DNA of 63,913 nucleotides, the filler included, from Reticulomyxa filosa (lineage: Eukaryota > Protista > Foraminifera), in NCBI GenBank assembly GCA_000512085.1. It is 17 parts of 17 records of this genome, joined end to end, with 100 filler letters (N's around TTAATTAATTAA, not from the genome) between each part and the next. Parts side by side here need not be neighbours in the genome. Positions count along the whole stretch, not along the records: positions 10,775 to 13,922 come from ASPP01000396.1; 16 more parts are not named here. One strand, 5' to 3'. The position numbers were made by a program, and so were the translations under genes. Below the pieces are notes generated by a model that saw nothing but the letters and a program-made list of their open reading frames with translations, searched no databases and was not told the origin of the DNA. Positions 10,775 to 13,922 of this stretch are shown here, one piece after another; the first letter of the stretch is position 1, and each line of letters opens with the position of its first letter.

Positions 10775-12125
10775 CATGATGAATGATATTAAAATGATTT
10801 TTTTTTTTTTTTTTTTTGTTCTTGTTTCGTTTTACCTTATAGTGCGTTTTACCGTAAGGACAAAACTTACGTTTTCGTTTAGTCTTTAGATAATAAGTAT
10901 GAAAGTTGTTTGCAAAGTGTAAGAGTATAAAGCTTGTTAAAGATACCAAATGGTAAATTTTGGTTATTGTTTGGTTTGTTCTGTTTTGTTTTAACTGTTA
11001 AAAAAGGAGCTTTGAGTCCAGTAGGACGAAAGCGCTACTCCAGAAAAGTTTTTAACTAGTTCAAAATAGGATCAATAGATTCTATAAGCCTAAAACAACT
11101 TTAAGGAAAGCTTATAAGAATCCGGACTGACTGAGTCGATACAATGTGGAAGAGCGGTCTGCAAAAAAATCCACTCTAAAAAAAGTTTGACAAAAATCCA
11201 CTCCGAAAAAAAGTTTGAGGAAGAAAAATCGAAAGAAAATTCCTCTTAAAAGTACAAAGAAAGTGAAATTATAATAGAAGAAGGAGAGACAGAACAGAGA
11301 TTTGGACCACTGGAAGCAGAAAAAATTAAACATTATAATGATGAAGACATGTTTGATAGAATAATAACACAGAAAGAAAGAGAATGGCTGCTTGAGCCAA
11401 TTACACAGAAGAAGGAAGAGAAGCAATAAAGGCGTACCCAAATAAAAAAATTAAGCAAGAATGTATAGAAGTTTGGGAAAGCTATGACACAGAATTGTCA
11501 GAAAGTATGCAAATGGAAGATTTTGAAAGAAATAAATATTTAGCAGATGAGATAAAAAAAGAAAAACAGAATGGGTTTGGCAAACATAGAAGACAAAGAA
11601 TACAAAAACAAATGTTTAAAGAGATAGATAAAAAGAGAATAGTACTAGAAAGTATCATAAGTGTAGTATGTAACAAAGAAGTCACAGCACAAAGCAAATG
11701 GTTATGAATGAAGGCTTTGGAAGATACTGAGAGTAAGGAAATAGGACTAAGAACAAATACAACGGTATACGTTGGTAGACTCGTAAATGATGAATACTAT
11801 AATTATTACATTGGAGTAAATATTGGATAAACGTAGAAAGAACATTGGTAACAAGAAAAGTGGAAGAAATGTTAGATAAAAGATAATTAATAACAGTTGA
11901 GCATGTACAGACCATGGAATTGTGGAATGATCTATAAAGACTTCATGGGTATGTGGAAAATAAATGTGGTTGTTACAGCTTGATAAAAAGGGCGTTAACC
12001 AACAAGATGTAATATGCGAAATTTCGTGTACGGGACAGTTTTAGTATAGGATATTGTACTGCTTATTTATAAATGTTTTTTTCTAAGTTATTAAATACTG
12101 CAACAATTTTATGCATTAATTAGTA
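10775..12125 (+). repeat. Left arm of ~1.35-kb inverted repeat
   Basis: Reverse complement of 12570-13922 apart from ~2 single-base indels. Mirrored ORFs appear in the ORF track (11112-11441/13254-13583; 11495-11707/12988-13200). Confidence 0.97.
10993..11061 (+). ncRNA. Type I hammerhead-ribozyme-like motif with variant core
   Basis: GGAG-CTTTGA-GTCC(AGTA)GGAC-GAAA-GCGC-TA-CTCC, with distal helix AACT(A)GTTAAAAA/TTTTTAACTAGTT. Core is CUUUGA rather than CUGANGA. Confidence 0.6.
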
Positions 12126-13703
12126 CCTTTCTGAATCCCATGAATTTTCTAATTAATACTACTGGCCCATTTGATTCTTGCTGATACCTTTCTAGATATT
12201 GAACCAGTTTTCGTATGGCTAACGCACCTTGAAGTTGCAATTTATTTAATCTTTTATGCTGTCTACATTTAAGCCTAAAGCAGCAAATGTTTTGCTTCTT
12301 TCTTCTATCTTTTGGCTTCCAATGATATGCTAATCTCGTAATTAACATTAGCAATGGCACCAACTCCTAAATTTATGCTTCTTGAAATCTTCATTTCACG
12401 TGTAGGTTCTTGGATTGCCCACACATCTGGTATTAGAAGGCCAATCTTTTCAATCCCTTTCATTTCAACGTCGTCTTCGACAGTTAAATCGATGAAAGCC
12501 GTAGTCATTCTTATAAATAACTTACTGTTACTTATTTGAAGAACTATTAAGCAATTGATTCGGCATTTATACTAATTAATGCATAAAATTGTTGCAGTAT
12601 TTAATAACTTAGAAAAAAACATTTATAAATAAGCAGTACAATATCCTATACTAAAACTGTCCCGTACACGAAATTTCGCATATTACATCTTGTTGGTTAA
12701 CGCCCTTTTTATCAAGCTGTAACAACCACATTTATTTTCCACATACCCATGAAGTCTTTATAGATCATTCCACAATTCCATGGTCTGTACATGCTCAACT
12801 GTTATTAATTATCTTTTATCTAACATTTCTTCCACTTTTCTTGTTACCAATGTTCTTTCTACGTTTATCCAATATTTACTCCAATGTAATAATTATAGTA
12901 TTCATCATTTACGAGTCTACCAACGTATACCGTTGTATTTGTTCTTAGTCCTATTTCCTTACTCTCAGTATCTTCCAAAGCCTTCATTCATAACCATTTG
13001 CTTTGTGCTGTGACTTCTTTGTTACATACTACACTTATGATACTTTCTAGTACTATTCTCTTTTTATCTATCTCTTTAAACATTTGTTTTTGTATTCTTT
13101 GTCTTCTATGTTTGCCAAACCCATTCTGTTTTTCTTTTTTTATCTCATCTGCTAAATATTTATTTCTTTCAAAATCTTCCATTTGCATACTTTCTGACAA
13201 TTCTGTGTCATAGCTTTCCCAAACTTCTATACATTCTTGCTTAATTTTTTTATTTGGGTACGCCTTTATTGCTTCTCTTCCTTCTTCTGTGTAATTGGCT
13301 CAAGCAGCCATTCTCTTTCTTTCTGTGTTATTATTCTATCAAACATGTCTTCATCATTATAATGTTTAATTTTTTCTGCTTCCAGTGGTCCAAATCTCTG
13401 TTCTGTCTCTCCTTCTTCTATTATAATTTCACTTTCTTTGTACTTTTAAGAGGAATTTTCTTTCGATTTTTCTTCCTCAAACTTTTTTTCGGAGTGGATT
13501 TTTGTCAAACTTTTTTTAGAGTGGATTTTTTTGCAGACCGCTCTTCCACATTGTATCGACTCAGTCAGTCCGGATTCTTATAAGCTTTCCTTAAAGTTGT
13601 TTTAGGCTTATAGAATCTATTGATCCTATTTTGAACTAGTTAAAAACTTTTCTGGAGTAGCGCTTTCGTCCTACTGGACTCAAAGCTCCTTTTTTAACTA
13701 GTT
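12109..13703 (-). mobile_element. Degenerate, internally deleted non-LTR retrotransposon (RT remnant + putative restriction-like endonuclease remnant)
   Basis: WLLEPIT/EEGREAIKAYPNKK resembles RT domain 0 and YYIGVNIG resembles RT domain 7. The spacer encodes GLLIPDVW...LGVGAIA...FAALGL...LQLQGALAI, resembling the PD-(D/E)xK RLE tail. Many stops and shifts. Confidence 0.5.
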
Positions 13704-13922
13704 AAAACAAAACAGAACAAACCAAACAATAACCAAAATTTACCATTTGGTATCTTTAACAAGCTTTATACTCTTACACTTTGCAAACAACTTTCATACT
13801 TATTATCTAAAGACTAAACGAAAACGTAAGTTTTGTCCTTACGGTAAAACGCACTATAAGGTAAAACGAAACAAGAAACAAAAAAAAAAAAAAAAAAAAT
13901 CATTTTAATATCATTCATCATG
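12570..13922 (-). repeat. Right arm of ~1.35-kb inverted repeat
   Basis: Reverse complement of 10775-12125. Both contig ends read CATGATGAATGATATTAAAATG inward. Confidence 0.97.
13634..13703 (-). ncRNA. Type I hammerhead-ribozyme-like motif, second (mirror) copy
   Basis: Same motif as 10993-11061; here the distal helix AACTAGTTAAAAA/TTTTTAACTAGTT is a perfect 13 bp. Confidence 0.6.

Follow-up and report, generated by a model that had tools for sequence, protein, structure and literature searches.

The question raised by this locus is whether a hammerhead-like fold, carried in a palindromic contig of the foraminiferan Reticulomyxa filosa, is a self-cleaving RNA, the remains of one, or a hairpin of other origin. 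The window is a stretch of 63,913 nucleotides, filler included, joined from 17 parts of 17 records of this genome, and all positions given here count along it. A first-pass annotation had proposed that the fold is a decayed copy or a new variant of the type I hammerhead, and that it is a self-cleaving RNA which defines the 5' end of an element. Our own reading is that the motif is probably an inactive remnant of a type I hammerhead, a solo and decayed copy of the kind that metazoan Penelope-like elements (PLEs) and retrozymes carry.

The motif takes up 36 nt of the + strand at 11006-11041, and reads GGAG-CUUUGA-GUCC-AGUA-GGAC-GAAA-GCGC-UA-CUCC. All of the parts originally described, namely helices I and II, CTTTGA, AGTA, GAAA and AGCGCT, were located. 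Helix I consists of 4 bp between GGAG and CTCC (11006-11009 with 11038-11041), and is followed by the non-canonical, 6-nt 5' core strand CTTTGA (11010-11015) and by helix II, 4 bp between GTCC and GGAC (11016-11019 with 11024-11027) with AGTA as its loop. GAAA (11028-11031) provides G12-A13-A14 and A15.1, and the self-complementary AGCGCT (11031-11036), running from A15.1 to U16.1, occupies the place of helix III. The cut had been predicted to fall after 11037, and this is correctly placed, the A at 11037 being A17 (H17, non-G). The topology is that of type I, with helices I and II present and the open ends in helix I, and every helix is perfectly Watson-Crick. The closing pair of helix II, G10.1-C11.1, is present (G11016 pairs with C11027), as are the 3' core G12-A13-A14, the A15.1-U16.1 pair (U at 11036) and a non-G residue at position 17. 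The AGCGCU palindrome amounts to a minimal helix III, which can form solely between two molecules.

The motif is the only match of a relaxed type I descriptor on the + strand, and an identical copy lies on the - strand at 13654-13689, in the other arm of the palindrome. Positions 10775-13922 (ASPP01000396.1) are a single palindrome of 3148 nt with ∼31% G+C, made up of a left arm of 1351 nt (10775-12125), a unique centre of 444 nt (12126-12569) and a right arm (12570-13922) that is the left arm's reverse complement except for two single-base indels. A global alignment of the piece against its own reverse complement places these indels at ∼10818 (TT vs TTT) and at 10996 (AACTGTT vs AACTAGTT), with 0 substitutions over the 1351 nt. 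Indels without substitutions look less like diverged repeats than like noise from sequencing or assembly, or else a duplication of very recent date. The centre shows no self-complementarity and has a base composition distinct from that of the arms, and both arms stop at the same base at the contig ends, which are thus exactly symmetric. The palindrome goes back either to an inverted duplication of very recent date or to a fold-back or chimera arising from library preparation or assembly. ONT template-complement fold-back was rejected as its sole cause, given that the 444-nt centre is genuinely unique, and twin-priming inversion was rejected because the same segment is found in both arms. A read-through transcript of the palindrome would be expected to form a 1.35-kb duplex.

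There are two copies of the motif because the 1.35-kb segment carrying it exists as an inverted duplicate. The first-pass annotation placed the fold near each end of the palindrome, and the identical sequence in both arms bears this out; as arms of one palindrome, however, the mirror copies are not to be counted as independent support.

The arms hold some further repeats. A T23 run at 10798-10820 is mirrored as A22-24 at 13877-13899, each being 23 nt away from a contig end. In the outward direction the run resembles the poly(A) tail of a retroposon, with a small hairpin, CGTAAG-N7-CTTACG, and a tandem repeat of 17 nt, TACGGTAAAACGCACTA/TAAGGTAAAACGAAACA (family D8), before it. On the strand of this run the hammerhead-like motif would be antisense. 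At 11165-11218 (mirror 13477-13530) there are two tandem units of 27-28 nt, AAAAATCCACTC(C/T)(G/A)AAAAAAAGTTTGA(C), with 92% matches.

It is at the 5' core strand, the most important feature of the class, that membership fails. Instead of C3-U4-G5-A6-N7-G8-A9 the motif has the six bases CUUUGA, without G5 and A6, and we therefore file it as a hammerhead-derived relic rather than as a ribozyme. CUUUGA is two edits from CUGAUGA, with C3, U4, U7, G8 and A9 still alignable; a CUGANGA box is absent from both strands of the whole 3148-nt piece. In the course of events that we propose, the motif works, or once worked, like a canonical metazoan type I hammerhead, and would have acquired a small lesion in which a single U took the place of the G5-A6 of CUGAUGA to give CUUUGA. 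Such a lesion would delete two catalytic-core residues and shorten the core strand, and would let CUUU pair with A13-A15.1/G15.2, so that an ordinary imperfect hairpin would form and not a three-way junction. A survey of hammerheads found the core to fit the consensus almost invariantly (PMC3088659). In that survey kobs was <0.1 per min with a single A6C change, activity was low when there was an insertion after A6, and candidates whose cores were altered in a highly disruptive way showed no activity (PMC3088659). No natural core variant in that survey or in the paper on PLEs (U3-A8 covariation) is without G5. From these published mutational data we infer that the motif is most likely catalytically dead.

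Folding predictions give a competing hairpin. The hammerhead-like pairing has a predicted energy of -7.2 kcal/mol, the plain hairpin with CUUU paired to AAAG one of -10.6, and the minimum free energy (MFE) fold one of -11.6, so that the hairpin is favoured by 3.4-4.4 kcal/mol, in a calculation that ignores tertiary contacts. The pair probability of helix I is 0.03-0.13. In the predicted two-molecule fold the dimer joins via the flanking TTAACTAGTTAA palindromes, not via AGCGCU. The 3.1-kb contig contains no second copy of the motif on the same strand, and since the sole other copy is antisense, a single transcript cannot dimerise through AGCGCU. Self-cleavage, as originally proposed, is thus unsupported, given that G5 and A6 are absent, the core is one base short, no Rfam hammerhead model matches, the hairpin is predicted to be stabler and the partner lies on the other strand.

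How often might such a motif arise by chance? We used a relaxed type I descriptor (a 4-bp helix I, a CU...GA core of 5-8 nt, a 4-bp helix II, GAAA, 0-10 nt, U and a non-G), and took its chance rate, counted per Mb along one strand, from Markov-1 sequence of the piece's composition, a model that under-represents the hairpins of real genomes. With G-U pairs allowed, the descriptor matches ∼1 per Mb, a rate that is not negligible across very many windows; restricted to Watson-Crick pairs, it matches 0.11 per Mb (34 matches in 310 Mb of random sequence). Just two of these 34 carry G10.1-C11.1, and one has a palindromic helix III, both being family features that emerged in real hammerheads without being constrained by a descriptor (PMC4209133). 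None of the matches in the 310 Mb combined G10.1-C11.1 with a palindromic helix III and with a core no more than two edits from CUGANGA. A relaxed match alone is thus unremarkable in a scan of many windows, while the full combination of features is unlikely to be due to chance and makes hammerhead ancestry likely. Such ancestry is, as far as one sequence can tell, the most probable origin of the motif, and of the two options left by the first-pass annotation, the decayed copy is the one favoured by this resemblance, beyond chance, to a dimer-type type I hammerhead.

Homology searches returned nothing that could be placed beside the motif. Rfam cmscan of the 3148-nt piece (E<=10) found no hammerhead, and gave only two insignificant, mirror-image matches to the sR20 snoRNA. 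This C/D-box match, at 11334-11365 (+) and 13330-13361 (-), scores 18 bits (E = 1.7), far under the gathering score, and its AAUGAUGA box is probably due to chance. With the 76 nt alone, the search at its most permissive, there was again no hammerhead match at E<=10, from models that may be weak on forms lacking helix III, and only insignificant matches to mir-240 and U4, both on the opposite strand. Thus the Infernal/Rfam check that had been suggested for the motif came out negative for both the piece and the 76 nt. Exact 22-mer and 25-mer scans had 0 matches in viral, metagenome and prokaryote-genome collections, blastn in its distant mode found nothing among phages or plasmids, and a full-text search of the literature for the motif string had no match. 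A looser pattern, TGAGTCC-N3-8-GGACGAAAGCGCT, matched two metagenome, three genome and no viral sequences. All of them lie in bacterial contigs rich in GC, and none has a hammerhead core upstream; we rejected them as relatives and ascribe them to chance. A tRNA scan of the piece found none.

The sequence bracketing the motif can be read in two ways. The 5' flank TTTTAACTGTTAAAAAA (10989-11005, +) and the 3' flank TTTTTAACTAGTTCAAA (11049-11065, +) form the two strands of an outer stem, and each is also one copy of a 17-nt direct repeat, TTTTAACTAGTT(A/C)AAA (family D1), which brackets ∼45 nt holding the motif. The mirror arm (13629-13707, -) carries the motif with both repeats intact (13691-13707 and 13629-13645), and its outer stem has 13 contiguous pairs plus 7 more (fold z = -3.3); the left copy, whose 5' flank has one A fewer, has a weaker outer stem (z = -1.95). 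The direct repeat doubles as a distal stem I because its core, TTAACTAGTTAA, is itself palindromic. The distal extension of stem I that had been described is therefore real as an outer stem, with 13 bp in the mirror copy, although it is equally a direct repeat. Read as a repeat, it could be a target-site duplication (TSD) around a solo insertion of ∼45 nt ending in AGAAAA, a reading that we regard as equally good. Such a bracketing repeat would fit a solo, heavily truncated retro-insertion, and a retroelement origin of the motif is likely. Cervera & de la Pena describe PLE hammerheads as mostly single motifs, probably from truncated PLEs (PMC4209133). In an Anolis PLE the point where reverse transcription begins is only ∼110 bp inside the ORF and near the hammerhead, so that 5'-truncated copies keep the hammerhead.

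The surroundings of the motif give one hint of a boundary. The AT skew flips from T-rich upstream to A-rich downstream exactly at the motif (10985-11045), which suggests a junction of two differently oriented sequence units. This skew flip is the one weak hint in favour of the first-pass proposal that the motif defines the 5' end of an element, and no RT/EN or other homology was found downstream. Downstream of the motif the left arm is A-rich on the + strand and has broken K/E-rich frames only. These frames, of 59, 103 and 40 aa at 11250-11830 (+), are interrupted by all three stop codons, and may represent either a decayed ORF or mere A-rich non-coding DNA. The unique centre has a 67-aa ATG ORF of non-repetitive composition (12305-12508, -). 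A Pfam search of the frames of the piece gave no match, the 103-aa arm fragment had no HMMER match in 1.8 billion representative proteins, and an ESM Atlas search gave no lead for the arm frames or the centre ORF. For the latter no homologue was found in Pfam, in the atlas or in a word-based search, the best PDB match having E = 1.5, and exact look-ups of nine ATG-start ORFs were blank. No RT or GIY-YIG domain or other signal of a retroelement protein was recognised in the piece, which leaves 1.1 kb, with broken frames, between the motif and the palindrome centre, and it showed neither a pair of pLTRs nor a tandem unit of the retrozyme kind. A candidate Penelope 'DKG' motif at ∼11976 (LDKKG) was dropped, having no profile support.

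What else might the motif be? One alternative, which we think unlikely yet deserving of serious weight, is that it is a chance or structural look-alike, a nested imperfect hairpin without hammerhead ancestry, built from the outer TTAACTAGTTAA stems, GGAG/CTCC, GCTTT/AAAGC and GTCC/GGAC. It could then be a small fold-back, a MITE-like or miRNA-like hairpin, or a palindrome at the level of DNA. The MFE and centroid folds are indeed a plain hairpin, with simple complementarity between CUUU and GAAAG, and the best Rfam match of the 76 nt, insignificant and on the opposite strand, is a miRNA precursor hairpin; the failure of any hammerhead model to match and the chance rate of the relaxed descriptor favour this explanation too. 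However, a hairpin accounts neither for the asymmetric insertion of GCGCUA nor for the GA/G internal loop, and it leaves A15.1/U16.1, the non-G at 17, G10.1-C11.1 and the exact palindrome AGCGCU unexplained as well. Random sequence amounting to 310 Mb had no instance of these features together, and the string UGAGUCC...GGACGAAA fits the layout of the canonical core and helix II. A different explanation accepts hammerhead descent and supposes that the stem-loop has been kept for a role other than cleavage; a retroelement protein might recognise it, for example, or it might act as a boundary or processing signal where the A-rich unit starts. The sign change of the AT skew at the motif is consistent with this, as are the perfect Watson-Crick helices and the confinement of the changes to the core, where they add pairing. 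Against it, no associated protein was found, and the two copies are one duplicated sequence whose intact helices may just reflect youth; we consider such a functional derivative quite improbable.

That the motif is an active variant with a novel 6-nt core, CUUUGA, and cuts itself after A11037, be it in an intermolecular dimer or with the aid of a protein, strikes us as scarcely credible, even though all requirements outside of the core are present, rare natural core variants exist (U3-A8, A6C, insertions), some with low activity (PMC3088659), and one PLE hammerhead is known to be protein-assisted. G5 and A6 are both missing from a shortened strand, and no such natural active variant is reported in PMC4209133 or PMC3088659; added to this are the competing hairpin, the predicted dimerisation via the flanks and not AGCGCU, and the lack of a same-strand partner at the locus. 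It is likewise very unlikely that CUUUGA is the selected consensus of an undescribed lineage which cleaves without G5 and A6, between molecules or helped by a protein, or that it has become a stable stem-loop signal for where a new retroelement of the fold-back type has its 5' boundary. Were CUUUGA to prove both conserved and active, the long-held indispensability of G5 and A6 for hammerhead catalysis would be overturned. If the motif is a decayed hammerhead, which is the reading that we prefer, it is nothing out of the ordinary, a by-product of active Penelope-like elements or retrozymes in a eukaryotic genome rich in AT, and is useful only as a marker of the past activity of these elements there.

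Known hammerheads place the motif as follows. Like the variants described by Perreault et al. 2011 (U3-A8, A6C, the A6a/U13a insertions and the saltern 2a/2b insertions), it deviates from the near-invariant core, but those variants alter or insert one position and keep G5, whereas the motif is without both G5 and A6. With the min-HHRs that PLEs carry in their pLTRs it shares a palindromic minimal helix III and a short helix I. Published PLE min-HHRs have a helix II of 6-8 bp and an extra base between A9 and 10.1, in contrast to the 4 bp of the motif and no such base, and, unlike them, the motif has no recognisable RT/GIY-YIG ORF or pLTR nearby. Min-HHRs are often solitary and are sometimes found as opposite-strand pairs 100-700 bp apart (PMC4209133), whereas the motif copies are 2.6 kb apart and lie in the arms of a palindrome. 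In the canonical metazoan hammerhead of type I, helix II has 4 bp and helix III 1-2 bp with a palindromic loop, and the active form is a dimer (PMC4209133; PMC6765202). From hammerheads of this type the motif differs in its core (CUUUGA vs CUGANGA, with G5 and A6 lost and one base fewer), in its helix I of 4 bp vs ∼6, and in having neither a tandem same-strand repeat nor an Rfam match. Type I topology, G10.1-C11.1 and a palindromic helix III are published features of metazoan and PLE hammerheads (PMC4209133; PMC6765202). The motif resembles the metazoan type I hammerheads, such as Schistosoma Sm-alpha, newt satellite 2 and the animal non-LTR retrozymes, in topology, in its 4-bp helix II and in G10.1-C11.1, and further shares with them GAAA and A15.1-U16.1 (PMC4209133). 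Two more points of likeness are a helix III so short, with its palindromic loop, that dimerisation is needed, and the interruption of helix I by an internal loop (PMC4209133; PMC7229834).
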